In this document: positions 5,014 to 54,970 of the stretch, in pieces
Position numbering within the stretch: the stretch's first letter is position 1
Layout: each line of letters begins with the position of its first letter
Assembly: GCA_965637545.1 (NCBI GenBank)
Contig: OZ281500.1
Coordinates: forward strand, 5,332,001 to 5,396,000
Direction: 5' to 3'
DNA length: 64,000 bases
From: Phallusia mammillata
Lineage: Eukaryota
Translations under genes and position numbers: made by a program
The notes under the pieces: generated by a model
Told to the model about the DNA's origin: nothing
Databases searched by the model: none
Seen by the model: the letters and a program-made list of their open reading frames with translations, nothing else

Positions 5014-6817
5014 ATGGATTATGTACGAATTCTAGTAGTTTGGTTCGCCTTGACCGGTGTGTCTTTGGCAGAAGAAATGGTGACAACAGCAGTACCCAAT
5101 AATGTAAATGAACCTCAGTCGTGTAGCTGTGAGGATTTAAGCAATCTTGAAAAGGTGGTGATGGTTATGCAGGAAGGCTTAATGGATTGGAAGGCAAGAA
5201 AAACAGAACAAAGGGGTTTGAGCAGATTTAACAACATTGTGCCTATTACAAGACATTGATTGTTTTAAACCTTTCACTAAAGCGCAATATATATTGCTTT
5301 CTGTAACTATAAACAAGCACATTAAAATACTAGTTCCAGGCCAAAAAAGACGATTTATGCATGACAACATCACACATTGTTTTGCATTGAATCAACCAAA
5401 CCTTAAATTAAACACTTTTGTTTGAAGATCGCCTTAAAAACACGACTTGTGAGGAAATTTGGAAAAGCGGTGTGACTGAAAGTGGAGTTTACCCCATTTA
5501 TCCGTTCCATGACCGCAGCAAATCTCTCGATGTATATTGTGATTTTACAATTGATCTACCAGGGTGGATAGTAAGTTTTTTTTGTCAGTGTTGGAATTTT
5601 AAATATTCGATCTAAACTCTGAATCGACAACTGAGGTTCCGTCGTATTTCTAAATAAACCTTAGTTGTCGACTGTAATTTTGAAGTTTGTCGATTTGCCT
5701 AAGTGACATTTTGCAGACCTTTCAACGCCGAATAGATGGATCTGAAAACTTTTATCGGTACTGGGACGACTACGTGAGTGGATTTGGACATTTGAATGCA
5801 GAGTTTTGGATGGGTATGTCTTTTATTCACCTGCAAAAAATCCACGTTAATTGGTTTATTTTACTACAGAATGTTCTTGTTTTTGTATCATTTTTTTTGT
5901 TCGTTTCGATAAAATGAAACTAGTTATCACACGTCTTTAGTGTATAGTGTACAAAAATGAGCAAACAAATCACTTTCGCCATTACGTCTCAAACTCAAAG
6001 GATGGAGTTCATTTAGGCATGTAATGTATTTGAAGCACGCACAGCGCAATGAAGGGTGGTTTTTATTTTATGACACAGAAGTTTTCAGTTGCGAACCTTA
6101 ACCAAAATAATAGTAGCTGTAACATGCTGAAAAAAAAAACAGTTTTACACCACCCTTCGTTTTGTAGCATTTGTTCAATGTATAGCATTGTGTTTACTTG
6201 GACCATTCTGGCGCATCGCTCGAAATAATGTAGACACCGTGTTTGATGCTGTATATTTGTACAGGATTGGAAACTCTGCACCAACTCACTTCAGAGCGAG
6301 AATACGAACTCAGAGTAGATATGGAAGATTTTGAGGGACAAACCAGATTCGCAAAATACAGGTATCTATTTTGGTGATCTAGAGTTGTTATAAAAAACTT
6401 TTCAGTCGTTTCATATTCCACGGCCCAAATCTGTTTCTAGTACATTTAAAGTGGGAGACGGAATAGGCTACACTCTCCAGGTCAATGGGTATTCCGGAAA
6501 CGCAGGTTTGATATACCCACGCAAGTAAACATACATTTTAATTAAAAAAAAACTGTGATTAATGTACAGGTGATGCAATGGCAATTCATAACAGAATGAA
6601 GTTTACAACAAGAGACAAGGACCAAGACCACGCACCACACAACTGTGCCTCAAAATTCCAAGGAGCTTGGTGGTATAACTACTGCCACGAAACCAACCCA
6701 AACGGATTGTATTTGGCAGGACCCCATCACTCTTTTGCTGATGGTGTTGAGTGGTATACATGGCATGGACACTATTACTCGCTTAAAAGAATTGAATTCA
6801 AAATCAGAACCAAGTAG
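5014..6817 (+). CDS. FReD lectin gene A (class 1 N-terminus), secreted fibrinogen-domain protein, ~283 aa if the 5215/5216 donor is used
   Basis: Exons: 5014-5215 (or 5193), 5428-5570, 5717-5813, 6265-6361, 6441-6505, 6570-6817. Signal peptide, SCSC, then FReD motifs [58 protein letters not shown]. Exons 2-6 have no stops. Confidence 0.8.
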
Positions 6818-7122
6818 TAGGGTTTTTGCAGCAATCATAATTTCTATCAAGTTCGGTTAATTCATTGATGATAATAATCATACATAAAACAATTTAATAA
6901 GGTACAATAGAAAATTTCAATTTGGTGTTGATAAAAAAAAGTGAAAACGCTATTTATGGATCCTGTTGATAAATTGTATGAAGATTAGTTTGTCACTAGT
7001 TGTTACAAGAGGAAGGCAATGGTAAAATTTGGGTTTAAAATAAAATTAGTCTCTATCGTGGCCACAAACCATAAGACGAAGGCACAACTGAATATTTATA
7101 TCTGGACATGTAAACAAATTTA

Positions 7123-7171
7123 AAGTAGGCATGGAAGATTTTGAGGGACAAACAAGATACGCAAAATACAG
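7123..7171 (+). pseudogene. Orphan 3' half of FReD exon 4
   Basis: ATGGAAGATTTTGAGGGACAAACAAGATACGCAAAATACAG|GTATC ([13 protein letters not shown]) with an intact donor and no neighbouring exons. Duplicate at 27056-27104. Confidence 0.85.
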
Positions 7172-8325
7172 GTATCAGCTATGGTAATGTACAGAAGTTG
7201 ATGTTAAAAACGTTTCAGAACTTAGTCGCTTTTGCAAACGAACGTTCAATTGGTAAGAACTCGTTTCAAATACACTAGTTACCCAAAACAATAGAACGAC
7301 TTTTGTTCAGCAAATACCGTTGTTCTCACGATAACGCTCGAGTCATGATCAAGTGGCTTAGACCTCCTGCGATCGACAGGCACCGCATAACACACGAACT
7401 AAAATCCAATAATACAAGTTAACATACTTGTACTAAAAAACAAGTCCAAATCAGTCTAAAAACAAGTTCAAATCTGCCTGAAAAAACAAGTCTGTACATG
7501 CCAAATGGCATACTTAGTATATTTAGGATATTACAAACAACTTCCAAACTTTACCACTACAGGATCCTAAATCAACTTCAAAAGCAGTTGCAAAACACCT
7601 CGATCACAACCAAATATTGACACGTCGTTATTTACAACGTCATCGAAATTTCCACATGGTTTTTCCCTGGTCGAGAATTTATTACTGCCGTAAGCTCAGT
7701 TAAACAGCTATAAACTGCCACGTAAAACTAAAATACAACAGTGTACTTGAATAAAAGTTCAAATTCACTATAAAAGTAGTTAAAAAACAAATAGCCTGCC
7801 GTACATATACAATCTGATTTGATAGAAACAAGACAAAAAGAATAACATTTTAATAGTAGGTAGCTAAACCAAACCATCTCAAATGTTCAAGAAAAAAGTT
7901 ATTACAACAAAGTTTGAAGTTATAAAAAGCGTAAAAATATTCTTTGCGCTAGTGTAGTAATGTCGTAAATTGACTGTGGGGAGGAGAGGTACATTAGTTA
8001 CGACGATATAGGTACACACATCGAATTGTAAATTAAAGCTCGTAAAATGAACCTAATACATTGACAATGAGTTTTTTTTATTTATTCCCTTGTTCATCGT
8101 GCACTTTACTACGCACATTCAGTGTTATTTGCCCTAAGGAAGGCGACCTGCATAGGACGTCGCAACGTCAGTTCCAAATACATTTGCCAGAAGAGGTCTG
8201 TATAGATTATATTATGTCTAGTAGAAACAGCTAATAAATGACCAAGAGTTTGTTTGTCTCTGCGCGATGCTAGTTGTAGTTTTTTAGCCAAATGATCGGT
8301 TATTTTTACTTTGACAGAAACCGTG

Positions 8326-10039
8326 ATGGGTTTTGTACGAATTCTAGCAGTTTGGTTTGCCGTAACAGGTGCATCTTTGGCGGAAGAAATGATGACAACA
8401 GCAGTGTCTGATAACACTCTGTCTAAATGAACCTCGGTCGTGTAGCTGTGAGGATTTAAACAATCTTGAAAATGTGATGACGGTCATGCAAAAACGGCTT
8501 GGTGCAATGCAGGAACAAGTACATGCATTGAAAGGCAAGAAAAACTGCAAATTTATCGCTGTACTACATGCCTATGCAAACTACTTTGGTGTTACAAACG
8601 CAAAGTTTCACATCGGTTAACTTACACTTGTAGGAATCACAATAGGCATCACCAAACGAAAACCAGGTTACAGACGCCGGTACAACAAAAAAATAATAGA
8701 ATGCTGATCATATCGATTCAAACTCACATTATGCACCGCAAACTTCGTTGTTTTGGCAGTGCAGTTAAGTAGTTAAAACATAACTAATTTCAAGCGACCT
8801 AACACATTGAACTCTTTTTGTGTTTTGTTATCAACCAAAACCTTGCACATGTTTGCAGATCTTCACAAAAACACGACTTGTGAGAAAGTTTGGAACAGCG
8901 GAGTAACCGAAAGTGGAGTTTACACAATTTATCCCTTCCATGATCGTACTAAACCTCTTGATGTATACTGTGATTCTACCACTGATCTACCAGGATGGAT
9001 AGTAAGTTTCCAGTATTACTTGTAGTGTTTTAGGTTATGACTGCTGTAGTGTAGTCAAGGCAATTTGTGCTCCTTTTTTTCGTTTAGACGTTTTAGCGCC
9101 GAATCGCCGAATCTGAAATTTTTTATCTGTACTGGAACGATTATGTGAACAGATTTGGGGATATGAATACAGAATTTGGATGGGTAAAGCATAAATCCGG
9201 ATGATTTAATGCTTCATGCCAGAAGTTTTTTGCAATCAGTATCATAATATTTCACTTTCTTTAATCGTTACAGTATTCACACCTAGATTGTTTTTTTTGT
9301 GTGACTTTTTTATCTTTTCGTTCAGTCCTAAAAGTGCCCAGAACAGTGTGCAAACACGTTAGTACTAACGCTTTTCTTTGCACAGGGTTGGAAGTTCTGT
9401 ACCAACTAACATCAAAGAGAAGATACGAACTGAGAGTGGACATGGAGTATTTTGAGGGAGAAACAAGATTCGCAAAATACAGGTAGCTGTGCAAGGAGTT
9501 GTTCCACTTTAATTATTCTTTTTATTTTGAAACCATTTTTCCTTAATATGCAAACAATTATGAAGTTACTGACACAAGGTATTGCATGTTTTTTGTTCAG
9601 CACGTTCAAAGTTGGGGAAGGAACTGGTTATGTCTTAAGTGTCTCTGGATACTCAGGCAATGCAGGTAAAGTATTTAAAAGCTGTACGTCATTTGAATGA
9701 TTATGGCTAAGGGTGAATAACACCAGTCTCTTTGTGACTAAATGACAAATTCAAATGTTTGCATAAACATGGGTTCCCATAACAGGAGAATAATTTTAGG
9801 AGACTGTTTGGAAAGGCACAACGGTTCGAAATTTTCGACAAGGGACAAAGAGATGCAAGTTCTTCTAGTTGTGCCTCACTATATAATGGAGCTGGGAGGT
9901 ACAACGCATGTCATTGCACAAACCCAGATGGATTATATCTGGGAGGCCCACATCATTCATACGCAGATGGTGTTGAATGGTATAAATGGCACGGGCAATA
10001 TTACTCACTCAAAAGACATTCAAAATCAGAGTCAAATAA
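8326..10039 (+). pseudogene. FReD pseudogene B (class 1)
   Basis: Exons: 8326-8534, 8859-9001, 9088-9183, 9386-9482, 9601-9665, 9800-10039. A 4-nt insertion in exon 1 gives an early TGA. TAG at 9094-9096. Exon 3 is 1 nt short. Exon 6 has several frameshifts. Confidence 0.92.
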
Positions 10040-10848
10040 CGATATATTATTTTGCACGTCCTACAATACAGTAGTTGCAATAACATTACATAGTGGCATT
10101 AAAATGATGCTTTGTACAATTTGACCTGAGTATAACCAATCGAATTCTCAATCATATTTTTCAAAGTAGCCCCAATCGCATTTTTCGAAGTAAAATGATT
10201 AAGAACGTGTACTGTATGCTGGTCTTTGTTTCAGAAAATAGAATGAAACTCTTGGAGGAGAAAAAATAAATTTGCATGTAGTGACACAAATCGACGAAAA
10301 GCGCAAAAATTTTCTCAGCGCAAATAAAAAACGTTTAGAAAATTGGTCCTCAAGCCAGTCAAGAAGAAAGTGACACTGGCAACACTAACAGGCACAATAA
10401 GCAAACTAAAGCATAATCTACAAAGTCATAGAACTGTGTTGTAACATATAGCTAAAGTACCGCGCTTTTCTTTTTAAATTTAGAAGAATATGAACCAAAT
10501 GAATTTCATCGTACGCCAAAAAAGACGTAAGTCGATAGTGACAACTTACAGTAACAAAACCTCTCTTTCATCATGCAGTTGTTTGAAGTGGAAAGTCAAG
10601 TACAAGTAACAGCATGCAGAAACACGGCACCTTCCTAATATTTTATGTGCCAGAGAACACAAGGTTATTTCTTACTTATTATTGAAAACGAAAGTAAGGA
10701 ACCTAACAAATACGATAACAACTGAAAAAAGGGTAACCAAAGAAGGAAGTCTGATAACTAAAACTGACAGGTGAAGTAATGCTTTCCCAACTATGATTAA
10801 AGAATTAAAAATTTTAACTTAAATACTGCACAAAAATATTTATTCTAG

Positions 10849-11010
10849 CTCATTTAAATTGAAAGCAGGAGATGGCTACACACTCCAAGTCAATGGGTAT
10901 TCAGAAAACGCAGGTTTGATTAACGGACACAATGAACTGTTTTAAAATAAAACTCTGTCGGTCATTTAACGGAATAATGGAATTAAGATTACAACAAGAA
11001 TCAGGAACAT
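10849..11010 (+). pseudogene. Orphan FReD exon 5 plus decayed start of exon 6
   Basis: An exact 65-nt exon, 10849-10913 ([21 protein letters not shown]), with AG and GTTTGA sites, followed by an AATAATGGAATTAAGATTACAACAAGA relic. Duplicate at 30775-30940. Confidence 0.85.
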
Positions 11011-12889
11011 GGCATATAACATTCAGGATCTTACCACTCTAATGTTGATGACATTAAAGTGTCTGCAGTGTCATGAGTATTTGCTTAATAATAGTAAGGA
11101 TTTTACCAGAATTAAGTAACGATCGCATTCGAGTCGTGATCCCTAACAATCTTAAAATCGATTACGTATCTCTCTGATTAATATACTAGCATCAACTAAT
11201 TGGTAATAAATCTATTTCAACATCAATAAAGAATAAAGTACTGAGGCAGCGACCACAACAATACATTTTTGATTTACAAAAGCACAGAAGTAGATTTACT
11301 GGTTCAAAACTAACCTCAAACATACATCATTAATATGTGCCGCTAAGGCTTTGAATTTCCAAACAAGAAAGGTTTACAACATGTTTACAAATCAATGAAC
11401 TTGCATAACGATGTTTCCAAGCCCCACTAAAATGGTCAGAAAAGACAGAATGGGTACCGTAAGCCGAACAATAAGTTTTTTTTGTTTGCGGTGGTGTCCA
11501 ACCATAAACAGTATCGACTTCATTGCAAAGAAGTAGACACACTACAAAAAATTGAAAAAGGCAAGCAACAGGTGGGTTCTTGATTTTGCATTGTGTCACC
11601 AGTAGTTTAGGATTAGACCGCAAGTCAACGGTGATTCTAACAATTCATGCCTGTACAGCAATTCGTTTTAGATAACTTAGTAAAGTGAGTTAATGTCTTG
11701 TATATTTAAAAAGCATAGATAATTTGAAAGAAAAGTCCTACATTTTGGCAGTGGCTTATGGAAAATAGAAACACAAACATAAATATGACTTACGTTTTCT
11801 TTGTCCCGACTTACGTTTTCTTTGTCAAAATATAACGCAAAAAACGCCAGTCCGTACACCCTAGCCAAGCTTAACTCGATGAAGATTGGAATTGAACCTG
11901 TGTGTTAGCGCGAAGAAACTTTTAAATGTATGTTAGTATTTGGAAGCTATCCTGCATAGTGGTATTGTAAATAAAAAATGCTAAGGAGCTCATATGGATA
12001 AGAAACATGCCGTTAATACGGCGTCCAAAAACATACAATAATTTTCTGCGGCATTATACAACCACAAACGTAAAACAAAACGCAAGCAATGAAAAAATAC
12101 AAGGCAACCGTTAAGTTGTTGATTTTGTATCATTTGCTGCCAGTAGAATAAAATCTCGACGATACAGCCACGTCAATGAAAGTATCTTAATCAACACACA
12201 ACCCTATAAGAGGGTTTATAGCCTAAAAGAAAAATATCGTACTGCAGTTTGCAAATGTTTTTTGTGTGTTTCTCAGACAAAAAACAGCTAAAGGAGTGAT
12301 TAACGCATGGTGAAAAGGTCTGAAATATAACCAAAACACAACAACAGTAATTCAATTGAATTTAACATACTGGACAAAAAGGAGGGCATTTGTTGTCAAA
12401 TTCAATACAACTTGCCTTCAATACAAATGCATTTAACCGAAAAGTGAGTTTAATTCATAGAATTTAGATGTTGTTTGTAGCGCTTAAAATAACTGTAAGT
12501 TTACCTACAGAACATACACCTCGTTGCAAGTTAAGTTCTGGTACAAAATGGAGCAGGTACCCACCCACAAACCAACACACAGCTTAATTATGAAACACCA
12601 CCAATCAATTGTTAATCTACAGGGCAATAAACATAACAAAATAATATCTACAAAGATATGTACTATAAACGTTCCGAAACAACAAACATATCGAAAAAAT
12701 AACCATTTCCTCCAATCCCCTGTAACACCAGCTTTTGATCTTTGATATTCATGGGCCCTAGTGTGGCGCACTGGCTGCACCCCACTCTGATGGGGTTTGA
12801 TCTAACGCAGTAAAATAAACCGATATGCAACCTTGCAAACATGCAAAGCTGCTAATTCTTGAAGAACAAAATATTAAAATAACGTAGAG

Positions 12890-13553: not shown

Positions 13554-15961
13554 ACGTAGAGGGTAAGACGAAAAGTTTTTGGCAAGAGTATTTTACAATA
13601 AACACAATAGACACCACAGTTAAATAATTTGGAGAACAAAAGCAGGAGAAAGAACTTGAGACTAAATTTGCATCGTTTGTAACCAGAAGAATACGATGTC
13701 AGAGATACACCCACAAGCCCACGTTAGCTTAACATACATTCAAACCAAAAGCTCTAAGTAAAATCAACACAAAACAATCTCGGCCAGAACTCATGGTAGA
13801 TCACAAATTACTTGAATTGAGGATTTGGTTTGCTGGTTGTTCATTAAAAACAGTAGAGTATGTAAAGGGAACACGCAAAAAGTAATGCAGGGAATTGTTT
13901 CACTGGTCACATCACACAGTCATGTATGTTTTTGATAACAATTTAATTTAAAATAAATCGAAACCGAAACTGACTCACAGACACCCCGTTGCGCTGACTA
14001 ACCTAACACACCAAAGCGTAGGCATGCCTTTGTTGTCAGATTAAATATAAGTCTGTCCTAAACCGGATAATGGGTGGATTTTTTAAAAACAAATTTTGTC
14101 TGTTGGGATTGTAACAACTGTAGGATGACAGTGAATCACAAACACCTCGTTGCATGTAACATCCTGGCATTAAGTTACGACTGATGCATAAATATACCAC
14201 CACTGATTGCATGATACAACACAAGTATCACTTCAAAGGTTGCAAAAATAACTGTCCACCTTTAAAGAAAATTTAAACCGCAGTTCCGAGTTAGTATTCA
14301 ATATTTCACAATACCCAGGCATAAACCAAATTTACAATACTATACTAAAGCTAGTAGTGCACCAAAAGTGTTTGTTGGTCTGAACAGTTTGACCAAATAT
14401 GTAATTTTGAGATGAATCTTTTCAAGCAACGCTTTGGTCAGTAACACAAGTACGCCAGTTGGCAAACCAGCAGTTAACTGTTTGATAAAATGTTACGTTG
14501 GGGGCGAAAATCAGTCCAATTGTACCTAATCATAATACAAGGAAGTTGTTGCCTTGATTATATTGCAACAATTTAGAGTTAGACCATGAACAGAAGAAGG
14601 CAACCAGTAGGTGCGTCTTTAAACTTGTCCGTTTGCAACAAGTAAAATAGGATGCTGGTGATACACCCACAACCTTGTTAGAACAATAAGTTTAGAAGCG
14701 TGTTAGTTATTAGTATTGTTTGCCAACACTGTGCCAAACCCCAAACCTCAACATTCCCGAAAAAAGACACACTTATTAACGTCGTCAAAAAGCGATTGGG
14801 AAAGTGCATTAAAATAGAAGTTCTAACAATCAAGGCATGTTTATGTATATATCTCATCTGTCCTAAGCAGATAATAGGTGAATAGTTTTAATGCAACATA
14901 AACCACAACCGAAAGTAAATAAAATACACAAGCCCTTTGCATTTTACATCCTGAAAAAGCGTAGGAGAGCATGAATCAACACCACGCTTTTAACAGGATA
15001 CTGGAAGCTATAGCGGGTGAGCGTATGTTGTCAGATTCAATATAAAGCTGTTCTCGAACGAATGATGGGCGGAATTTTAAATACAGATGTTGTTTGTTGG
15101 GCGTAAAACAACTGTAGGTTTAATGTGAATCATAGATACCTTGTTTCAAACAACTTCCTGGCACTTATGTGTTTAAAGATTGACACATTGTGCACTATAT
15201 TGTAAGATATAGTGAAGGGGAAAAGGTTGCATCTTCAAAACACTCCACCATTAAATGTTACACGGATTATCAAAACACACAACCGTGAAGCAGTATTTTA
15301 TAACGTAAAGGTTAAGTATGGTGACAGTCTTTTTTGAAAAAATGTGCGTTGCACACTATAGTAGCATCATGTGATACTCACAAATATGCCGCGAAAAATT
15401 TGTTTTTGCAGACTGCAACTACCATCGCATGCTGTAGAACTTCATAGCTAAATGATGGTGCCGTGACAACGCTAAGAGGGAAACACTAAAGTCACAAACA
15501 GCAGCTTTCCTATAAGTTAATACAAATGACAGCGTATGATATTACAATGTCAAGCGTGGTGATGTTTCCCTACCTGAGTAAAAATTTGGCGAAATTTGGT
15601 TTTAAAACAGATTGGAAATCGTGGTTATTTTAAGCAAATGAAAACGATTGTAAATGGTCTAAAAAGGAATATCCAGTTATACAAGAAGGCATTTATTGCA
15701 TCAGCAGCTAACTGGTCATGAAAACAAAACCATTAATGTTTGTTCGGTGGGCGATTGCTTCAGGTTAGGACAGATACAACGAGAAAAGGAAACAGAAGCA
15801 GCACATGTAGGCGGTAAAAAAGATAAGGCCTATAACCATAAAAGAAAAAAATAGCAGAATCTGGCAGTTTAAAAGAACAACATGTGTGAAAGAACAGTTA
15901 GACTTTAAATCGATATCGACGACAGAAGCATTTGCCTAGAAACTTGAACAAAAAGAAAAGA

Positions 15962-16951
15962 ATGGCATTGGTAACAGGATTTTTGTCGGGCATTTTAGGA
16001 TCAATTGAACTGGAAACGGAGAAAGCTGTCAAAAAGCCAAAGGCATACAACGTTGGAAAAATTATTTTGGTTGCAATGTTCTTTGTAAGCAGTGCGATGT
16101 TTGCAGTGTACGAGCCTCATTTCGTTACTTGTTACCCTGTTGATAAACTAGAAACCGAGCAGACCATGGAACAAAAAAATGACGTCGGTTTTCAGTGCTG
16201 CTCACAGAAGCCTTGGATTCAGCTCATGAAATATTCTCCGCTGACTTTTCTTGCAGTCACTTGTTTCTATTTTCTGGCTAGCCAAGTGATGGTGGGTTGT
16301 TCCAAAACCAACCTCTCCAAAAAAATACAGTCATTCGTTTACCTTTTCCACCAGTTCCGCCGAAGCAATGGAAAATTTGACTATCACAAAGTGAAAAGAA
16401 ATTACATCCAGCACGATTCACCAGCAGAAATAGTAAAAGACTTTGTTTTTTCCGAAAACGGTCAACTCAGGTACACGGAAGATATTTACCAAGGATACAA
16501 GAAAGACGCCACTCTATGTTTAGTTGCAGCAGGTGTTGGAATCTTTTTCGGACTCCTAAATGTTATTTCAGGAGGAATTAATCACCAGCAGTTTCATTGC
16601 AACTTGGGCAATTTATCTGAAGGGGTTATTGCGTACAAATGTTTTGTTCTAAATGTTGATGTTTTTATTATTTTGTCCGTCATGTTTTGCGTGCTGGCAA
16701 TAATCCAAATTGGTTTAAAGTTGGCACTACTCATCGCAATACGGCACATTAGAGACGTAGATGGAAACCCAATACCACTGGGTATATGCTTGCAAAATAC
16801 CGATTTAAAGTTTTTACTTGTCATAACCAAAACAATTACCGTGAACGAAAGAAGACAGTTCGCGGATTATTTGCAAGATTGTATAAATAATCCGGAGGCA
16901 CATGCACTTCCATTGGTTGGTAATAATAATGGACAGTGTGTACAACAATAA
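15962..16951 (+). CDS. LRRC8/pannexin-like 4-TM large-pore channel protein without LRR domain (L1), 329 aa, intronless
   Basis: Manual alignment to the LRRC8A pore domain, written as L1 / LRRC8A: MALVT/MIPVT; VTCYP/MICLP; CC..K.W..LMKYSP/CYENRLHWFAKYFP; LSKKIQSFV/SSKLEHFV; DIYQGY/DIVYRLY; FHC..AYKC/VDC..TYRC; TDLKFLL/NDFAFML; RQFADYL/KRFAVFL. Four hydrophobic segments. First ATG at 15962. Confidence 0.85.
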   Translation: MALVTGFLSGILGSIELETEKAVKKPKAYNVGKIILVAMFFVSSAMFAVYEPHFVTCYPVDKLETEQTMEQKNDVGFQCCSQKPWIQLMKYSPLTFLAVTCFYFLASQVMVGCSKTNLSKKIQSFVYLFHQFRRSNGKFDYHKVKRNYIQHDSPAEIVKDFVFSENGQLRYTEDIYQGYKKDATLCLVAAGVGIFFGLLNVISGGINHQQFHCNLGNLSEGVIAYKCFVLNVDVFIILSVMFCVLAIIQIGLKLALLIAIRHIRDVDGNPIPLGICLQNTDLKFLLVITKTITVNERRQFADYLQDCINNPEAHALPLVGNNNGQCVQQ

Positions 16952-19437
16952 CATGTAAATCCTGTGGATCTAGGTTTACCCAATCAGTAAACAATGTTGT
17001 TGTGTTATGCTTTGTGCATGTTTATGTAATAACAATGTATCTAAACAAAGTAATGTATAGCAATGCTTTACCGTCGATGATCGTATACAGAAGAAAAAAA
17101 AAAACTAAACAGCTACACCGCTTCAATAACTGATCTGGTGGCATATCTCAAAGTTCCACAACCTTTTTCAATCATGTTTCTCATCAATACAAACCTTTCA
17201 TCAAGCATTACTTCTGATTTTCGTCTTTCGCAAACACCTATTTCACATACGCAACTTAACTTTACGTCGAGCCGAAAACCAAGCACCCAGAAAGGAACGC
17301 ATACAAGTTTGTGACAATATAAAAATTGTTTAATGTAATGGAACACCAAAGTGTATGGAAATTCGTTTGTGTCAGATTTAATAGAGGTTTGATTTTGGCA
17401 GAGAGTTACAAATTTTAAAATAGAATAGAAACAATACAAGAGTCCGTTTGGTGTAAAATAGCGGTACGCTAATCGTGCATATCTCATTTCATGTTAATTT
17501 TGGTACTGAGTGAAGTAAATAATGACGCTTAAATTAACATCACATCACATTAACAATAGAATGTGGCGTGTTTATACCACCGCCGATGACAACATTCGTA
17601 ACAAACAAACACAATGCTTCACAATAACTACGGCAATATGCAGGTCCAGCTTAAAAAAGAACGAGTCTAGCTTCAAAAGGTCGACACATGTACAGTAACT
17701 AATGTCAGTGAATTTATTATATCTTCAACAAAGTTATGGTTGGATGAACTGTTCGGTCAAGTAAAACATTTCCAGTGAGATTTGTAAGCATAAAAACCCA
17801 CGTTTAAGTTATGCTTATACCATTAAAGTCATGTATAGCTCATTTAAATAATATTTCGTAATACCAGATGATTGTTTTTAACTGAAACAAGTTGTAGTAA
17901 TTTGGCCCACGAACAGAAAAAGGTAATGAATTGGTAGGCCTTTGCAACGTGCTCGGCCAGTAGCATAAGAGATACACTAGTTGTATGCGATTCCAAGGAT
18001 ATTAGATGTTCTACACATTCTAAAAAAAATTTCAATGCAAAAAAATGATATTGGTAGCATTTACCCTTATATAATAAAACGTAGGACAGTATAATTCAGC
18101 TTTTAACAGGAAACTGGAAAGTATTGTTTGCTGTCTAATTCAACAAAACCCGAAACATTTTAACTGCATGGTAATGGGCGGCATTTTTAACTACGGCTGT
18201 TCTTATAACAGCACAAGACTGTATGTTGAATATGAGTTATAAGTCAGACGCCTCGTTTCATGCACAATCCTGGCACGGATGATTGTAAAGACAAAAACAC
18301 TATTGTAAATTATATTACAATTGGTTCACAGGAAAATGTTACATATAACACGGCAAACAAACGCATTTCGTCATATAAGCTACAAAGATGCGGACCACGG
18401 CTGATTTTATTTAAGTATCGCAGAGAGAATAATGAGTTGTGAACGCCAGCACTGCTACAACAACCCAAAACAAATTTTAGTGTGAGAGAAAAACGTTTCG
18501 TACATAGGTTCTCATCTTGTTTACTACCATATTTTAAGATAAGATGAATGTTTTTTTAAGATGAATGTTTGTCAGTAAACCAGCAACCCAATTTGTTGGG
18601 CTTTAAGATTAATCAAAAGCCACATATATTGTTAGAAAGTGAGACGTTTTCTCAAAGGAAAATTTGAAAACCATTGACACGGCTGTATTAAATACACTAT
18701 TATTAGTTGCACACGCAAACTATAATGAACACTACATAGCTTTAAGCTAGTATTGTTTGATATAAAAACCAGGTTATTTTCTATATGCTCAACGTGTAAC
18801 CCTACATTTCAGCATTGAAGTAGTGTATTTTTCATGGGATTCAAGCCCACGACCCTCCAAAAACAAATCCTTTTTGTATGTGTTTTTGTCAGCACATACG
18901 TTCCAAATCATTTTCGCAAAGCACGTGGGAACTGATCGTTCCGGCGCCATATGGATTATATTACGTCACGACAGTGTAGTTTAATCATACGAAGAAAGCT
19001 AATTCTGCAAATAGAACAAAACGTAGGCAATTTTCGCCCCATATGCGTCAACATTGACTGCACTTGAGTAGTAATTAAACATACTTCACCTTCTAATAAC
19101 CTTCAACTTCAACTGTTTTAACTTCAGGATCAAAAATGTTTGCTGAATTTCGACAACGCGGTATTTCTCGTCCTGTGTTTTTTACCACAAATGTTGGCAT
19201 AAAGTTAAAAAAAGACAACACTTCCCCTCTTAACCACGCATGACGTATGCAGTGTCGAACGAAACACGTACATACATGTTTGTACAGTTTCGCCAATGAC
19301 ACGAGTATAGTTCGGTCGAAGATACCAGGGAAAGTATATATAAACATCGTGCAGCGCAGGTTGAGAAACTGTCTCGGTTGTCTATGTAGTAACATACAAG
19401 CTAAGCTAAACGCATTTCAACGGAAATCGATACAGTT

Positions 19438-21208
19438 ATGGGTTGTTCGCAAATAGTTGTTAGTTTTTGCGCTGCTCTGCTTGGCATTGGTTATGGACAA
19501 CGATCAGAAATCGTTCCATTTGATCCATATACATCGAACGATTTGTCTATTTGTCAGTGTCCAGATATCAACGACTTACAAAGCGCAGTGGCTGACCTGT
19601 ACGAAAGACTTGACTTGTTGGAAGGTGAGAATATGATTACCCACATATTTAAGACATTGAATAACAAAATTAAAAAAAATAAGCAATAAAAAACAAAGAA
19701 ACCGTTGCAACCCTAACGAAATTCTTAGAACGGCTGAAAAATACGACTTGTGAAGAAGTTTGGAAAAGCGGAGTGACCGAAAGTGGAGTTTACACGATTT
19801 ATCCTTTCCATGACCGCACTAAATCTCTTGATGTTTATTGTGATTTCACTATTGATTTACCAGGATGGATAGTAAGTCTGCTCTATTATTTGCAATTCAA
19901 AAATGTTCCAACCACACCCACAATTGAAATGCTAATATTATTGTAAAGTTATGCTCTGTTACGCCTCATAATTCAACTTACTTAGACATTTCAACGCCGA
20001 ATAGACGGATCTGAGAATTTTTTCCTCTACTGGAATGATTACGTGAACGGATTTGGAGACATGAATACAGAGTTCTGGATAGGTATGACTTTTATCCACA
20101 AGTGAAACACCACAATTTTGTTTGAATTCGGTGTTTGTGCTTAGTTTCTTGTTTTCCGTTTTAAACAAATAAGGTATCAGTGTAAATATCAAAACCGAAA
20201 ACGGGAATTGGCCAGTTTAGGATGATATATCTTTACTGAATTTGCTTTTAAGATGGTCTTTGCGCCACCTTTCGATACTCCCAATTTGAGTGTGAATTCT
20301 TACGTTACTAGAATTTCCAGCTACAACGGTAAGCAAAAACTTTCGTGTTAACAGGAGTCTGTTCGATATACCGCGCCGTGTGTTTCGGTTATTCATAATA
20401 GACTAAAATATGGTGTAGTAAATCAGTAGTTCTCAAACGGTGCGTCGTTTCAATTTTCCAAGGGCGTCGCAGAATAGTTCCGTTTAGTGGCTTTTTATGT
20501 TTTGTATCAATAAACACAACTTTAAAAATAAGTTTCCTCATTAACTTTTATTTGCTGGTGCGACGTAAGATTAGAAAACTTTTCCAGAGGCGTCGCAACA
20601 AAAAAAGTTTGAGAACCACTGGTGTAAACGGTGTAATTTCTTTATTTTGTTCATACAGGATTGAGAACTCTACACCAACTGACATCAGAGCGACCGTACG
20701 AACTTAGAGTAGACATGGAAGATTTTGAGGGACAAACCGGATATGCAAAATACAGGTAGCTGCATGATGGACTAGGGTTGTTATCAAAATACTCCCAGAC
20801 GTTTTATATTGCATGGCATGAAATTTATTTTAAGCACATTTAAGGTGGGAGCAGGAGTTGGTTACACTCTCCAGGTCAATGGGTACTCCGGAAACGCAGG
20901 TTTGATATACCCACGTCAGTAAACATATTCGAATTAAAAAAAATTGTTGGCAACTTGCAGGTGATTCCATGGCAACTCATAACGGAATGAAGTTTACCAC
21001 AAGAGACAGAGACCAAGACTACGCACCACACAACTGTGCCTCAAAATTCCAAGGAGCTTGGTGGTATAACTACTGCCACGAAACCAACCCAAACGGATTG
21101 TACTTGGCAGGACCGCACGACTCTTTTGCTGATGGCATAGAGTGGAATACATGGCATGGTTATGATTACTCTCTTAAAAGAATAGAATTTAAAATCAGAA
21201 TTAGGTAA
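19438..21208 (+). CDS. FReD lectin gene C (class 2 N-terminus), 278 aa, intact
   Basis: Exons: 19438-19624, 19729-19871, 19986-20082, 20659-20755, 20835-20899, 20961-21208. All introns GT-AG; 837 nt open. Confidence 0.93.
20424..20621. mobile_element. hAT MITE in intron 3 of gene C
   Basis: TIRs CAGTAGTTCTCAAAC / GTTTGAGAACCACTG; degenerate TSD TAGTAAAT/GTGTAAAC (5/8). Confidence 0.8.
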
Positions 21209-24200
21209 CGTTGGTTTTTGCAGCAAAAGTAGTTTCTAGCAATATCAACATCGGTTAATTCATTTATGATAATCAAACATTAAACAATTTAATTGAGTAC
21301 AATAAAAAATTCCGATTTGGTGTTAATAAAAATAAAATGAAAACGGTATTTGTGGACCTCTTGATAAATTGTAAGAAGATTAGTGTGTCACTAGTTTTTA
21401 AAAAAAGAAAAGCAAAACTTGACACAACAGGATATTTATTTCTGGACATGTAAACTTTTTTACTGCGACCACTTATCAAAACGTAATCGTTAATGTTTCT
21501 CGTGCAGTAATTTGCAGTCCAACTTGCTCATAGTAGAGAGATGAGCAAACTTTTCAGTAAAAGGGCCAAAAACACTAAAATCAAAAGTGGGCAAAAATAT
21601 CTGAAATTTCTAAGGTTTTAACATCAGTAACTAAATGTACATGAAAACAAATCATGTCTTAACTATTTTTCCGCAACCAAATTTTTGCCATCTCATATTT
21701 GTTGCCATCTGAGAAGATTTAAGGTCGAGATTCCGCAGGGTTTCAAGGCATTGTGGTCTTTTTTTATTATGCTTTGCATAACTTTATTTTGTAAAAAACG
21801 TTTCCTGCCAAAAATTGTAAACAGAACAATAAATGCGAATAAACTGAGAAAAACAGTCGGAGTAACTCTGGGGTTGACCTTAAGTGCATAAGACTGCTAT
21901 GTCTAATTGTCTTATTATCTCAGGTGTAATTACGAATACAAAACTCAAGTAGTCCTACTCAGATACGTTTAGTTTGAACTCAAAATTTATGTTTTCCGCA
22001 CGTTAGTGATTGACGTTGCAAAACATACATTCCAACCTCCAGAACAAAACTTTTTATTCTTTTTTTACAAGTTTAAACGAAGAAGTAGGAAATTAAAATG
22101 ATCCCAGAATGCGAAAACATCTTCAACCACGTTGTCATTTTTTTGCAGTATGATTTTGTTATTGGTAATTTATATGCTTGGAAGGTCGTAAGTAAGTTCG
22201 CATGAAGACCAGCATTCGCTACAACACACTTCAACAATGCTGACAGTTACATGTCAATCAAAAAACTACTTCAGAACCCAAAACTTTAAAGTAAACTGCT
22301 TTTGAAAGTCTATTATCAAATCAACTAAAATCGTTGTGACCGAAGATTGAATTAAAACTTACATACATCAATCAAGTTCGGAGCCAGAAAGACAATACTC
22401 AAGACAACTAGTTTTATTCGCATAACTGCTGACAACTAAAATATTGCAACAATACACTGCAATTTAGTCACTTTTTTAGTGCTGTATCAAAATCTATTTT
22501 AAATAGACAGTTTTCATACACACTGACCCGGTGTCCATTTATTAACGTTTAGTTGAGTACATGATAGTAACCTGTAAAATAACGGATTTGGACTTCAGTA
22601 CATTCGTCGACTTTTTTCGAAAAAAGTAATCCTCAAAACATGTTTTTATGTTTGTGTATGAGTCAAGTCCCTGTTTTTGCAAATGATTGTACATTTAATT
22701 GGCTTAAATTCAATACGGTGTGATGTACCGATATCCCAATCAATTAAGAAACCCATTTTCATCGCTTACAATTAAAACTAAGATCAGTGTACCGTGACAT
22801 GTCACCCACGAGCGAAGTAAGTAACACAAGTAACGTACGTCACCTGTAAAAACAGTAGAGCTACTTCCACAGGAACTCACAACAAGCCGGTTTAGGAATT
22901 TCCGGTAAGTGACGCAACGGAGCATAAGCGTTTACGGTGACAATAATAGCTGATTCAGCAGTTATTGTCACAACCCTTTAAATTGCCTCGAACAGTAAAC
23001 GTAAAGAGAACTCTGAATCATTGACCATATATTTTAAATACATACTACAAGAGTTTTACGCTAAGAGAACTCCAAACAGATAAGAAATTCCTATAATGTG
23101 ATAACTGTGCAAAAGAACCGGTTTACAATTTTACGACAGATAATTCAGTTACTATCTAAAGACTATCAAAAGAACCGCTTCGTGGACAACTATTTAATGG
23201 CGCAATATCGTGCGTAAACTACCTATTCTTAATGTGGCAAAAACGATATATTGTAACATTCTTCTGTTGGTAGCATACTAAAGAAGCAGAAAAGTTTTGT
23301 GTAGCAAACAAGAAACAGTTTTCCAAAGGCCTGTGCTTTAAAGTTTTTTTAAGACACTGACACGTGTATTGTTGGATTTGGTGAAACCTTTCAAAATTAC
23401 ATTTATTACAGGCCTATAGAAGGAAAAAATGAGTTCTTTCGCCATCTGTTATAGTGTCTGAACCATATCAATAGGTATATCCATCTTGTTTGTTCGTTTG
23501 ACAGAAACAGACACTAACCAAAGAAAAGTACGAGGTGAATACAGGCTGCGATCAGCCGATAATCATGTTTAAACAAATATCTTGACTCAGCGCACAAACA
23601 AGTTTGTGTTTTTCGTAAAAGCAAAAATTAACTGCATTTCTTTACCACAACTGTAAACTAAAGTTTAACCCTATTTGTAAACACTAACCAATAAACATTT
23701 TTGGTATTTACTCGAAACATTAGAGTTACTCAATTTATTTGTGCTATTCTGTGGTTACCTCTAGGTAATGTGGTGACAAGGTTCCAGTATCCACGAGGTA
23801 ACGCGCTTTGCTCACACAACGTTAATTGTTGCGCAAAATAAAGGCTATTTTTGCTAAACAGCAAAAAGTTTGCCTAGCAGCGTATCATGTCTATAATCAC
23901 AAACATATCAATCACTTTCTTCACGTTTTGCATGCAAGAAGCTGAAATGGAGAGTTTTACACATTTGGGGCTAAAAAAGTCGTCACTGAGCTGACCAGTA
24001 TATGACTTTGAAATACCAAGCAACGCACTTTTTTCAATAGGTTTTCAACAACTGGAGTTTGTATTTATCATTTAGAAAATATGAAATTGGCAAATTCGAT
24101 CTCGTTTAAAAATTATTTTATTTTATAATGCAAACAGCACTTAAATCAAAAGTGTTTGAGAGTTTGCCAGTTTAATCAGAGTTGGAAACGCGACTGCACA

Positions 24201-25016: not shown

Positions 25017-26749
25017 ATGAGTTATTTGCCAATTGTGGTTAGTTTTTGTGCTGCTCTGCTTAGCAGTGGTTACGCACAACGATCACAAATCGTCCCGTTT
25101 GATCAATACACATCGAACGATTTATCTATTTGTCAGTGTCCAGATGTCAATGACTTGCAAAGCGAGGTGGCTGACATGCAAGAAAGACTTGACATGTTGG
25201 AAGGTGAGAAAAAGATTTGCTGACATTGAAAAACAAATTACATAAAAATAACATGTAACAACAAAAAAACAAAGAAATCATTGCAGCCCTAACGAATTTC
25301 TTAGAACGGCTGAAAAATACAACGTGTGAGGAAGTTTGGAAAAGCGGAGTAACCGAAAGTGGAGTTTACACGATTTATCCTTACTTCGATCGCACTAAAT
25401 ATCTTGATGTTTATTGCGATTTTAGCATTGACCTACCCGGATGGATAGTAAGTTCGCTCTATTATTTGCAATTCAAAAGCGTTTTAACCAAAATCGAAGT
25501 AATGACATCTACCGCAAGGTTGTGTTCTGTTATGCAACAAAATGTAACTTACTTTAGACATTTCAACGACGAATAGACGGATCTGAGGATTTTTTTCTCT
25601 ACTGGAACGACTACGCAAATGGGTTTGGAGACCTGGATACAGAGTTCTGGCTGGGTACGACTTTTATCCATCTGTAAAACACGAAAATTTCGTTAAATTT
25701 CAAATAGGATCTTTACGTGTGGAAATACATAAATAGTATAGAGTTAGTATCTTTTTTTTTGTTTAAAGATACATAAATAAACAAATTATGATGGTTGAGC
25801 GGTTTATTTCATTAAACCCGAGCCGCTAATTACGATTTCCTAAACAGAAAAATATAACAGAACCAGCAAAAAAGCAATCTGTATTATGTTTTGTGCTTTT
25901 TTCAAAACAGCACATAGAAAAATATGCAAGATAACAGCTACTGGGCGGTAGCAATGAAGATTAACATACGAAGATTCGTCCATGCAAAACCATAACGAAT
26001 CAGATTCGTCCATGCAAAAACCCATAACAATAGAGTGGTTATCAGTTTTGCTTTAAAAGTGGTAAAACGGGAATGTATGAAATTCCTGAATTCCGTGTAA
26101 TGAAGCCTATTGATATTTACATTTTGGGGGCATTTTGTTTTTATTGAGACTAAAATATTGGGTAAATAATGTATTTTCGTATATTTGTACAGGATTGGAA
26201 ACTCTGCACCAACTGACATCAGAGCGAGAATACGAACTCAGAGTAGACATGGAAGATTTTGAGGGGGAAATCAGATACGCGAAATACAGGTATCTACATT
26301 GGTGATGTACCAAGGTTGTCATCAAAAACCTTTCAGTGGTTTTATATTCCACGGCACAAATTTGTTTTTAGCACATTCAAAGTGGGAGGAGGAATAGGTT
26401 ACACTCTCCAGGTCAATGGATATTCCGGAAACGCAGGTTTGATATACCCACGCCCGTAAACATTTTTTAGTTTAAAAAATCCGTGGGTAACTTAATTGCA
26501 GGCGATGCCATGAAGGGGAATAACGGAATGAAGTTCACAACAAGAAACAAGGACCAAGATATTTATCCAAATAATTGTGCCTCAGAATTCCAAGGAGCTT
26601 GGTGGTATAATGCATGTCACCTTACTAACCCAAACGGATTGTATTTGGCAGGACCCCATCACTCTTTTGCTGATGGTGTTGAGTGGTATACATGGCATGG
26701 ACACTATTACTCGCTTAAAAGAATGGAATTCAAAATCAGAACCAAGTAG
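25017..26749 (+). CDS. FReD lectin gene D (class 2), 278 aa, intact
   Basis: Exons: 25017-25203, 25305-25447, 25558-25654, 26193-26289, 26372-26436, 26502-26749. All GT-AG, open frame. Confidence 0.93.
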
Positions 26750-28259
26750 TAGGGTTTTTGCAGCAATCATAATTTCTATCAAGTTCGGTTAATTCATTGA
26801 TGATAATAATCATACATAAAACAATTTAATAAGGTACAATAGAAAATTTCAATTTGGTGTTGATAAAAAAAAAGTGAAAACGCTATTTATGGATCCTGTT
26901 GATAAATTGTATGAAGATTAGTTTGTCACTAGTTGTTACAAGAGGAAGGCAATGGTAAAATTTGGGTTTAAAATAAAATTAGTCTCTATCGTGGCCACAA
27001 ACCATAAGACGAAGGCACAACTGAATATTTATATCTGTACATGTAAACAAATTTAAAGTAGGCATGGAAGATTTTGAGGGACAAACAAGATACGCAAAAT
27101 ACAGGTATCAGCTATGGTAATGTACAGAAGTTGATGTTAAAAACGTTTCAGAACTTAGTCGCTTTTGCAAACGAACGTTCAATTGGTAAGAACTCGTTTC
27201 AAATACACTAGTTACCCAAAACAATAGAACGACTTTTGTTCAGCAAATACCGTTGTTCTCACGATAACGCTCGAGTCATGATCAAGTGGCTTAGACCTCC
27301 TGCGATCGACAGGCACCGCATAACACACGAACTAAAATCCAATAATACAAGTTAACATACTTGTACTAAAAAACAAGTCCAAATCAGTCTAAAAACAAGT
27401 TCAAATCTGCCTGAAAAAACAAGTCTGTACATGCCAAATGGCATACTTAGTATATTTAGGATATTACAAACAACTTCCAAACTTTACCACTACAGGATCC
27501 TAAATCAACTTCAAAAGCAGTTGCAAAACACCTCGATCACAACCAAATATTGACACGTCGTTATTTACAACGTCATCGAAATTTCCACATGGTTTTTCCC
27601 TGGTCGAGAATTTATTACTGCCGTAAGCTCAGTTAAACAGCTATAAACTGCCACATAAAACTAAAATACAACAGTGTACTTTATAAAAGTTCAAATTCAC
27701 TATAAAAGTAGTTAAAAAACAAATAGCCTACTGTACATATACAATCTGATTTGATAGAAACAAGACAAAAAGAATAACATTTTAATAGTAGGTAGCTAAA
27801 CCAAACCATCTCAAATGTTCAAGAAAAAAAGTTATTACAACAAAGTTTGAAGTTATAAAAAGCGTAAAAATATTCTTTGCGCTAGTGTAGTAATGTCGTA
27901 AATTAACTGTGGGGAGGAGAGGTACATTAGTTACGACGATATAGGTACACACATCGAATTGTAAATTAAAGCTCGTAAAATGAACCTAATACATTGACAA
28001 TGAGTTTTTATTTATTTATTCCCTTGTTCATCGTGCACTTTACTACGCACATTCAGTGTTATTTGCCCTAAGGAAGGCGACCTGCATAGGACGTCGCAAC
28101 GTCAGTTCCAAATACATTTGCCAGAAGAGGTCTGTATAGATTATATTATGTCTAGTAGAAACAGCTAATAAATGACCAAGAGTTTGTTTGTCTCTGCGCG
28201 ATGCTAGTTGTAGTTTTTTAGCCAAATGATCGGTTATTTTTACTTTGACAGAAATGGTG

Positions 28260-34966: not shown

Positions 34967-35941
34967 ATGGCATTGGTGACAGGATTTTTGTCGGGCATTT
35001 TAGGATCAATTGAACTGGAAACGGAGACCGCTGTCAAAACGCCAAAGGTATACAACGTTGGAAAAATCATTTTGGCTGCAATGTTCCTGATAAGTTGTGC
35101 GATGTTTGCAGTGTACGAACCTCATTTCGTTACTTGTTACCCAGATGAAAAACTAGAAACCGAGCAAACTATGGAACAAAAAAATGACGTCGGTTTTCAG
35201 TGCTGCTCACAGAAGCCACTGATTCAGCTCATGAAGTATTCTCCGCTGACTTTTCTTGCAACTACATGTTTTTATTTTTTATCAAGTCAAGTCATGGTGG
35301 GCTGTTCCAAAACCAACCTTTCGACAAAAATTCAATCATTTGTTCGCCTTTATCATCTGTATCGTAAAAGCGAAGGATATTTCGTCTATGACAAACTTAA
35401 GCAGGGACGTGTTCAGAACACTGAACCAAACCAATGCATCAGAGACTTCATTTTGTCCAAAAAAGGAGAAAAAACCAAGTACACGAATGATATTTACGGT
35501 GGTCACAAAATCGACGCCATTTTGTGTTCAACTGCTGCATTTATTGGAATCGTTTTCGGAGCGTTGAATTTTATTGCAGGGGCAGTTAACCACCAACAGT
35601 TTGACTGCAACTTGACACATTTGACCGAAGAAGTTGAGGTATATAAGTGCTTTGTTCCAAATGTCGACGTGTTTATTATTTTGTCAGTATGTTTTTGCGT
35701 ACTAGCATTTATCCAAATCGGCTTAAACTTAGCACTATTCATCGCATGTTACTTCAATGACAAATGTGGTAATATAGTTGACATTAAAATATGCTCCAAA
35801 AATAGCGATTTAAAATTTCTACTATTTATAACAAAAACTATTACCGTGGACGAAAAAGTAAGTTTTGGGAGGTTTTTGCAAAAATGTGTAGATACTGCAA
35901 AACCACATGAGAAACAACCAAATGGTAATAATCCTGTCTGA
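34967..35941 (+). CDS. LRRC8/pannexin-like channel protein without LRR domain (L2), 324 aa, intronless
   Basis: Paralog of L1 with the same Cys pattern (VTCYP, FQCC, FDC, YKC), MKYSP, and SDLKFLL. 13 differences from L1 in the first 126 aa. Confidence 0.85.
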   Translation: MALVTGFLSGILGSIELETETAVKTPKVYNVGKIILAAMFLISCAMFAVYEPHFVTCYPDEKLETEQTMEQKNDVGFQCCSQKPLIQLMKYSPLTFLATTCFYFLSSQVMVGCSKTNLSTKIQSFVRLYHLYRKSEGYFVYDKLKQGRVQNTEPNQCIRDFILSKKGEKTKYTNDIYGGHKIDAILCSTAAFIGIVFGALNFIAGAVNHQQFDCNLTHLTEEVEVYKCFVPNVDVFIILSVCFCVLAFIQIGLNLALFIACYFNDKCGNIVDIKICSKNSDLKFLLFITKTITVDEKVSFGRFLQKCVDTAKPHEKQPNGNNPV

Positions 35942-53711: not shown

Positions 53712-54970
53712 ATGCCGATCTTGGGGGTTAGTTCAGTAAATGCTTTGCCTTTCCTGTCCCTATTTAAAGACAAGCCACTTCTGCCACCTTTAGAAAAAGT
53801 AAGAAACGTATTGTTTCTCTCAATGCTTGTGGCTGGGTGTGCATTATTCACTGTCTACGAATCCACGTTTGTTGCTTGCTTTTCTCAACGAAACAGCTCA
53901 ACAGCTTTAAATTACGTAGAGTTTGTCAAGGAAGAAACACACATCAACCAGCAATGCGGATTCATTGACGTTTGGATTCACTATCTGAGGTATTCGCCAC
54001 CGGCGTTTTTAGCACTTTCTGTATTGCTTTTTATGACAAACAGTCCGTTTTTCACCTGGCACAGTCAATGTTGCTCAGAAGCTCGATAAATATGCAGAAC
54101 TCTACAAACTCTGTCAGACGAAAAACGACAACGACAGCCCGAAAATTCCTGCGATGAAGATCGAATTGTCGGACAAGGTAAATGATCTTTTGGATAGAGT
54201 TGCTGTTTCACAACCAGACCCAATCGCAGCACATAATGTGCAAGTAAATATGGATAATCTTAACAACCAACAAAAAGAGAAAATAATGAAAACCGCAAGG
54301 TTTTCAAATTGACATTTTAGTCACGTTTTTCGGTGTTCCGTCTTTTCTTTGCCTGCTGATCTATTGCTACAGATACCGCCACTATTTGGTAGACAAGCGT
54401 TGCCGAAAAGATGACAAATTCCTCATCCGATTTAAAAACGAGAAAGATGCAGAAAATGTAAAAGAAACGATATCCGAGCTGGAACAAGGCCCATCTAAAT
54501 TCAAGACATCATTGACGAAAACTATGCACTTTTCATTAAAGCAATTAAAACGCAAATGACGCGTACATCGCTACAAAGCGTTTTAAACAAGGGATATTTG
54601 TGATTTCGCAGCGCATAAAAATAAAGCAGAACAAAACAACATGCCTCAGTGTTTAACAAAGGAGTTTGTAGAAGGCATGGCGAAAAAAGTGCGGCAAATA
54701 TGGAATTTTACATTACTTACTTCCGTAAATTGGCAGTTACGTTTTTGGTTTGCTTGTGGCTTACTTTGCAATACCTTATTTGTGACAGTCGTCTTATCAG
54801 CGCTCATACTTGTCAGCGTTTGCTTTTGCCGATTTTAACATTTCTAGTTTTATTGTGCATAACAAACCGCAATGGTCATGCTAGATTACAAGTGGTATTA
54901 CTTGAACAGTTTGAAATCGACTGTAAAATTACCGGCTCCGCACAGCTGTTACGCAAGTTCACATAATTAT
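53712..54970 (+). pseudogene. Divergent LRRC8/pannexin-like channel paralog L3, frameshifted
   Basis: LFLSML..CALFTVYESTFVACF and QQC..VWIHYLRYSPPAFLA match L1/L2. After a frameshift near 54062, VNVAQKLDKYAELYKLC continues the homology. Further frameshifts and stops occur downstream; the 3' end is approximate. Confidence 0.72.

Follow-up and report, generated by a model that had tools for sequence, protein, structure and literature searches.

Gene A1, an open reading frame (ORF) in the 64-kb window of the Phallusia mammillata genome analyzed here (i.e., the whole stretch of 64,000 nucleotides), is likely to be a real, maintained, and probably transcribed single-exon gene encoding a very divergent homolog of the LRRC8/pannexin pore domain that lacks leucine-rich repeats (LRRs) and is probably channel forming. 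The frame is open from position 15932 to 16951 (+), with its first ATG at 15962, the stop codon at 16949-16951, and no internal stops (Table 1). The earlier note on this DNA had described an intronless ORF with four transmembrane (TM) segments, two Cys pairs, a KYSP motif, and a DLKFLL segment followed by a stop about 25 aa later, and all of these are present. Kyte-Doolittle windows give four hydrophobic segments (residues 29-52, 93-114, 181-206, and 220-263), the first Cys pair, C57 and C79 (with C80 next to it), falls in loop 1 and the second, C213 and C227, in loop 2, and the motifs KYSP, DLKFLL, and FADYL lie at residues 90-93, 281-286, and 300-304, respectively, with the stop 25 residues past FADYL. 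No AATAAA or ATTAAA signal was found within 750 nt 3′ of the gene.

Table 1. Coordinates of A1, its parts, and related genes (window positions except for B1).
Feature	Position	Strand	Basis
Gene A1 CDS, 329 aa plus stop, intronless	15962..16951	+	ORF, AF2 model, structural matches
Probable 5′ UTR of A1	15917..15961	+	Contig starts: two probable RNA runs at 15917, third at 15930
A1 N-terminal helix, residues 2-17	15965..16012	+	Model secondary structure, pLDDT only 53-68
A1 TM1, residues 27-49	16040..16108	+	Model and hydropathy
A1 extracellular loop 1: conserved C57 and C79, strand 55-59, helix 73-82	16109..16234	+	Model, family alignment
A1 TM2, residues 92-112, KYSP (90-93) at entry	16235..16297	+	Model and hydropathy
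A1 intracellular loop, helices 118-135 and 154-162	16298..16477	+	Model
A1 TM3, residues 173-206	16478..16579	+	Model and hydropathy
A1 extracellular loop 2: beta hairpin 210-214/224-229, C213, C227, sequon N217	16580..16654	+	Model, alignment
A1 TM4, residues 232-261	16655..16744	+	Model and hydropathy
A1 cytoplasmic C-terminal helices 280-288, 294-309, and 311-315	16799..16906	+	Model
Gene A2, intact 324-aa paralog, 67% identical to A1	34967..35941	+	ORF, alignment
Broken B copy, without approximately residues 216-270	53712..54493	+	Three pieces in different frames, TGA stops
B1, intact B-subfamily copy, 333 aa	L004:1429-2427		Six-frame search

A1 is under purifying selection and is not a chance ORF. 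Its paralog A2, located 19 kb downstream, has diverged from it by a dS of 0.67 and a dN of 0.23 (Nei-Gojobori), the excess of synonymous change being significant (Fisher p 2.5e-12), and the resulting dN/dS of 0.34 compares with 0.09 over residues 56-110 (loop 1 plus TM2). Random neutral mutation to the same A1/A2 divergence left none of 2000 copies open. We exclude a chance origin of the frame on these grounds, i.e., because a paralog of only 67% identity has remained intact, because of the dN/dS ratio, and because no neutrally mutated copy stayed open.

Contigs assembled from three small runs of the same species, which are probably RNA (the library type is a guess), are confined to positions 15917-16840, with none in the 2.3 kb that precede A1 or the 2.6 kb that follow it. 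A DNA run, unlike these probable RNA runs, gives even coverage throughout the A1 region. The contigs show no joints and no loose ends, and they stop at 16840, ~110 nt before the A1 stop codon, the 3′ end thus lying outside their coverage. This pattern, for libraries whose RNA type is guessed, fits what is probably low-level transcription of an unspliced A1 message.

An AF2 model of A1 was built on a paralog-only, 30-row family alignment, giving a pLDDT of 78 and a pTM of 0.77 (pLDDT 42 from the single sequence). In Foldseek searches against the PDB, the top 50 matches were all LRRC8A, LRRC8C, LRRC8D, or pannexin 1 (E ~1e-6, prob 1.00, TM-score 0.5-0.6). VIA-align against 48,161 chains gave an LRRC8A:C structure as the best match (Z 15.3, 259 aligned residues, rmsd 4.2), with residues 17-325 of the model superposed on residues 15-410 of the LRRC8A chain, while pannexins 1 and 2 scored Z 12.7-13.5 (pannexin 1, Z 13.5 with 253 aligned residues) and connexin-50 reached Z 13.6 over 172 residues, restricted to the TM bundle. 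In the ESM Atlas, four LRRC8B-E clusters matched with TM-scores of 0.67-0.69 over A1 residues 1-329, compared to 0.62 for a pannexin and 0.50 for a connexin. These TM-scores are moderate (0.5-0.7) and helical bundles have a high background Z; because of that background, the fold call draws jointly on the fact that loops and cytoplasmic helices are covered too, on the concordance of three methods, and on an independent chain of sequence evidence.

The model displays the features of the LRRC8 pore domain, namely, an N-terminal helix, four TM segments, structured outer loops, and cytoplasmic helices, together with the 4-TM fold and two conserved Cys per extracellular loop of pannexins and innexins. 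The predicted helix of residues 2-17 corresponds in position to the N-terminal helix that lines the pore in LRRC8 and pannexin, and the C-terminal helices, which carry DLKFLL and FADYL, align to the LRRC8A post-TM4 helices up to residue 410. The intracellular loop is far shorter in A1 than in LRRC8A or in the B subfamily of relatives described below. In LRRC8A, the LRR region comes after the post-TM4 helices (PMC6363415). A1 as modeled adopts the pore-domain fold shared by LRRC8 and pannexin; since the model extends to LRRC8A residue 410 and the repeats follow those helices, the protein stops just where the LRR domain starts in LRRC8A.

Queried alone, A1 gave no significant match in Pfam (E≤1), PDB sequences, a word search of 5.8 billion proteins, or a language-model atlas. 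Since direct sequence searches were blank, its connection to LRRC8 had to be made by profile-profile and structure comparison and is transitive plus structural. Scanning the genome with PF12534 (Pannexin_like) returned weak matches (15-21 bits) to ORFs without introns, 370-520 aa long and located on other contigs, whose translations start ...MKPWWE.... By hhalign, the profile of A1, A2, and the B genes (A/B) aligned to a profile of four of these KPWWE ORFs over 235 columns (probability 97%, E 1.2e-10), from before TM1 to TM4, with the loop Cys in register. An hmmsearch of 1.84 billion representative proteins with the A/B profile yielded two matches only, P0001 (E 3.5e-4, residues 14-313) and P0002 (E 8.5e-4), and P0001 itself scores above the PF12534 gathering threshold (26.7 versus 25 bits).

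The earlier note had called A1 LRRC8-like and proposed Pannexin_like and Innexin profiles as a check. The likeness was borne out at the level of the fold, by the AF2 model matches, and did not extend to motif matches to LRRC8 in direct sequence searches. A1 itself does not reach the PF12534 gathering score (and has no Pfam match at E≤1), while 11 of the 30 family rows match that profile (best E 5.2e-7); neither A1 nor any of the 30 rows matches Innexin (PF00876). Searching the PDB with a profile of the A/B alignment found only a chance match (SURF1-like, E 4.8), and word-index searches stayed blank, whether the query was a 10-row alignment or region 1-350 of a long KPWWE paralog, the limits on word and length making these a weak test. 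Weak Pfam matches of B members to CD20 and DUF2207_C were dropped as low-complexity TM matches far under the cutoffs.

Six-frame searches of the 240-Mb assembly of the same genome detected relatives only in the A1 cluster on contig 7, the A/B clade, with A1, A2, and four B copies, being confined to 5.35-5.41 Mb. B1 is intact. The broken B copy of the window is 92% identical over its first 117 aa to B1, which lies 12 kb further on, and thereafter has frameshifts, TGA stops, and no TM3-TM4 segment; two more B copies nearby are each in two pieces. A joint profile gave 73 matches across the whole genome, corresponding to ~40 or more loci, arranged as tandem arrays on contigs 2, 3, 5, 6, 7, 8, and 15 and consisting nearly always of single open frames of 300-800 aa. 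At least 90% of the 30 family rows share P26, C57, C79, C213, and C227. Most paralogs begin MKPWWE, and the KPWW motif before TM1 is one that we take to be LRRC8 specific; A1 lacks it and has KKPKAYNV at that site, with only the Pro kept.

In a maximum-likelihood tree of the family (unrooted and without LRRC8 or pannexin sequences), A1 plus A2 (100/99) is sister to B (100/99), and the A/B clade sits on a long branch of 1.5 changes per column. A1/A2 and the sister B group are, as judged from these sequence comparisons, a fast-evolving branch that is invisible to Pfam and diverges most within a family numbering 40 genes or more. The earlier note's proposal of a lineage-specific family of LRR-less channels is supported insofar as A1 belongs to a lineage-expanded set of LRR-less genes, with at least 40 loci and LRRs found in none of them.

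The KPWWE-type arrays include, among others, those at C6:17.22-17.24 Mb, C6:17.68-17.72 Mb, C8:1.66-1.70 Mb, C8:16.226-16.235 Mb, and C2:4.05-4.07 Mb. Several of these genes are extended by 200-450 aa at the C terminus, giving open frames of 560-985 aa, and Pfam recognizes no domain in the extensions. At C8:16.23 Mb, the open frames of the three copies are ~740 aa long.

P0001 derives from a Logan assembly and P0002 from JGI and ENA metagenome contigs, and both are only 24-36% identical to the members of the Phallusia genome. From this origin and low identity, it follows that the family is present in at least one other organism. On the contig of P0002, another LRR-less member follows 2 kb downstream. 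The metagenome contig JGI 3300027611 has tandem LRR-less members at L053:10001-11185 (394 aa) and L053:13394-14341 (315 aa), the second of which matches PF12534 (E 7.6e-4).

Among known channels, the vertebrate volume-regulated anion channel (VRAC) proteins LRRC8A-E (PF12534 plus LRR) are the best structural match across the whole A1 ORF. The order of elements is the same, i.e., N-terminal helix, TM1, Cys loop with helix, TM2, and helical intracellular loop, followed by TM3, beta-hairpin loop, TM4, and cytoplasmic helices; the coding sequence likewise lies in a single exon, and relatives of A1 in the same genome match PF12534 and have a KPWW(E/D)-type N terminus. Unlike LRRC8, A1 has no LRR domain at all, ending at the equivalent of LRRC8A residue ~410, and itself lacks both a PF12534 score and KPWW; identity in structural alignments is 13-19%, and A1 is 329 aa long compared to about 800 aa. 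The C-terminal ~15-17 leucine-rich repeats of LRRC8 are missing in A1, which stops after residue 329. Because both the LRR domain and a PF12534 score were looked for and are lacking, A1 is not, on sequence grounds, an LRRC8 member in the strict sense.

With pannexins and innexins, A1 shares the superfamily fold, two Cys per extracellular loop, the absence of LRRs, and a similar length, and with pannexins an N-glycosylation sequon in an outer loop. It differs in that the family matches the LRRC8 TM profile (11/30 rows) and not Innexin (0/30), and pannexin structural scores are below those of LRRC8. The four-helix TM bundle of connexins (PF00029) also superposes on A1, but the A1 cytoplasmic helices remain uncovered, the TM-score by query is 0.50, and there is no Connexin Pfam match; connexins occur only in vertebrates and tunicates (PMC6391747), and the Phallusia genome has many bona fide connexin genes elsewhere. 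The KPWWE-type LRR-less genes of the same genome are homologous to A1 and share its intronlessness, tandem arrangement, four Cys, and lack of LRRs; identity to them is only 11-18%, however, and A1/A2 plus B form a separate, long-branch clade (support 100/99) without KPWWE.

By homology, the A1 product probably assembles as a ring of six or seven subunits and would act as a non-junctional large-pore channel of the plasma membrane, for release or uptake. Family biology suggests that the N-terminal helix and the beginning of the helix in loop 1 would line the central pore, with K72 of A1 at the latter site, presumably at the general position of the LRRC8A constriction. Loop 2 has a sequon in both paralogs (N217 in A1, N215 in A2) that, if used, would block gap-junction docking, and a non-junctional channel appears most likely because outer-loop sequons argue against docking. 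For chordate pannexins, a passage in PMC8769644 argues that glycosylation prevents gap-junction docking. Gating could not use an LRR ring and would have to depend on the N-terminal helix, on the intracellular loop, or on partner subunits.

An alternative that we regard as unlikely is that the fold has been kept while A1 forms no pore alone, the A/B proteins being a degenerate or regulatory subunit or a non-conducting membrane protein. They might co-assemble with KPWWE-type paralogs, by analogy with LRRC8B-E, which need LRRC8A, or they might have a different role tied to the neighboring fibrinogen-domain genes. The very long branch of the clade would agree with this, as would the loss of the KPWWE N-terminal motif that most family members keep and the state of the B copies (one broken, two in pieces, and one intact), a pattern suggesting that constraint has relaxed or is shifting. 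Against it stand the retention in A/B of all four Cys of the loops, of the motif at the entry of TM2, and of the helices after TM4, and a dN/dS between A1 and A2 that is low overall and lower still over loop 1 and TM2, the region that forms the outer pore constriction in LRRC8. Vertebrate VRAC does require heteromers (PMC6363415), which speaks for this alternative.

The earlier note had also seen no LRR exons downstream of A1, an observation that held up on a wider search. An LRR-core regular expression gave no motif cluster on either strand of the window, 10 paralogs, including 7 with lengths of 454-811 aa, showed no LRR Pfam domain, and the best 150 of 689 LRR_8 candidates in the genome all lie away from the family clusters, the nearest on the A1 contig being at 4.26 Mb. 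An exon-wise six-frame search found no PF12534 match above the cutoff anywhere in the genome, and a canonical LRRC8 gene therefore seems, on this sequence criterion, to be absent from it. The same kind of search gave no Innexin match at E≤1 and thus detected no pannexin gene, but its control likewise matched nowhere, so that this negative does not establish the absence of pannexins.

It is accordingly very improbable that the A1 ORF is the first coding exon of a canonical LRRC8-type gene spliced to distant LRR exons. A GT after TTG at 16918-16921 could in principle serve as a donor, and the probable RNA contigs fall short of the stop codon; these contigs are nonetheless free of joints, the 47 kb downstream hold no LRR motif cluster on either strand, the best 150 of 689 LRR_8 matches include none near the cluster, and A2, B1, and the other subfamilies all stop in frame shortly after the same helices.

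According to passages in PMC6363415 and PMC5064130, no Lrrc8 genes are known from invertebrates; both papers also state, with reference to Abascal and Zardoya 2012, that LRRC8 originated when a pannexin-like channel joined an LRR domain, an addition that may have brought volume sensitivity. The tunicate LRR-less family, including A/B, could tentatively be regarded as descending from a stand-alone pore protein that predates an LRR fusion in the vertebrate stem, a possibility we hold as somewhat doubtful. If it were true, the LRRC8 pore lineage would be older than VRAC, and the sister group of vertebrates would have natural LRR-free LRRC8-type channels gated by non-LRR means. A rooted tree would tell a vertebrate-specific fusion from an LRR loss in tunicates. 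The existence of such a pore family makes the idea linking fusion and volume sensitivity directly testable, through conduction, gating, and the effect of a grafted LRR domain. The location of A1 in a fast-duplicating cluster shared with fibrinogen-domain genes hints at a role outside housekeeping volume control. Our literature search, which missed most subscription journals, including Abascal and Zardoya 2012, found no publications on tunicate LRR-less genes of the LRRC8 type.

Self-comparison of the window revealed a segmental duplication of ~20 kb. It comprises a 6.6-kb block (6251-12889 versus 26179-32793, 95.4% identity), co-linear flanks (13555-15171 versus 32787-34285, 78-87%), and the gene segments themselves (15716-16889 versus 34723-35894, 75.5%). 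On this sequence evidence, A1 and A2 arose by DNA-level segmental duplication within a cluster interleaved with fibrinogen-domain genes. Intronlessness appears to be a family trait, since every member examined reads as one open frame across the channel domain. The retrocopy origin that the earlier note held possible is not supported, with the flank homology, the ~20-kb co-duplication with A2, the tandem arrays, and the family-wide lack of introns all speaking against it. That A1 is a dead processed retrocopy or a chance ORF is scarcely credible, for the lack of introns in A1, an A-rich run at ~17095-17107, and a reverse-transcriptase ORF adjoining A2 (36355-37710) are outweighed by two frames both open at a dS of 0.67 and a dN/dS of 0.34, by flanking DNA duplicated along with the gene, by examined family members that are single open frames in tandem arrays, and by probable RNA contigs restricted to the ORF.

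The 95.4% block adjoins channel genes that are only 75.5% identical, and this contrast in sequence identity suggests that the part with the fibrinogen genes underwent recent gene conversion or was overlaid by a younger duplication. Exons for fibrinogen C-terminal domains occur among the channel-like genes at 6253-6862, 20654-21409, 26141-26794, and 48477-49096 and also at about 40791-41400, and the ORF at 48555-49046 matches PF00147 (E 1.7e-28). Because these exons recur between channel-like genes, the two gene types are interleaved in one duplicating cluster.

The reverse-transcriptase ORF on the minus strand (451 aa; PF00078, E 1.5e-17) starts 414 nt downstream of A2 and is probably a non-LTR retrotransposon remnant. 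Elsewhere in the window, a 468-aa ORF at 1288-2694 (-), with no Pfam match, has a highly repetitive, charged, coiled-coil-like N-terminal half with EQRKLDAE-type repeats, and the opposite strand of the same segment also has long ORFs, as expected of a repeat.
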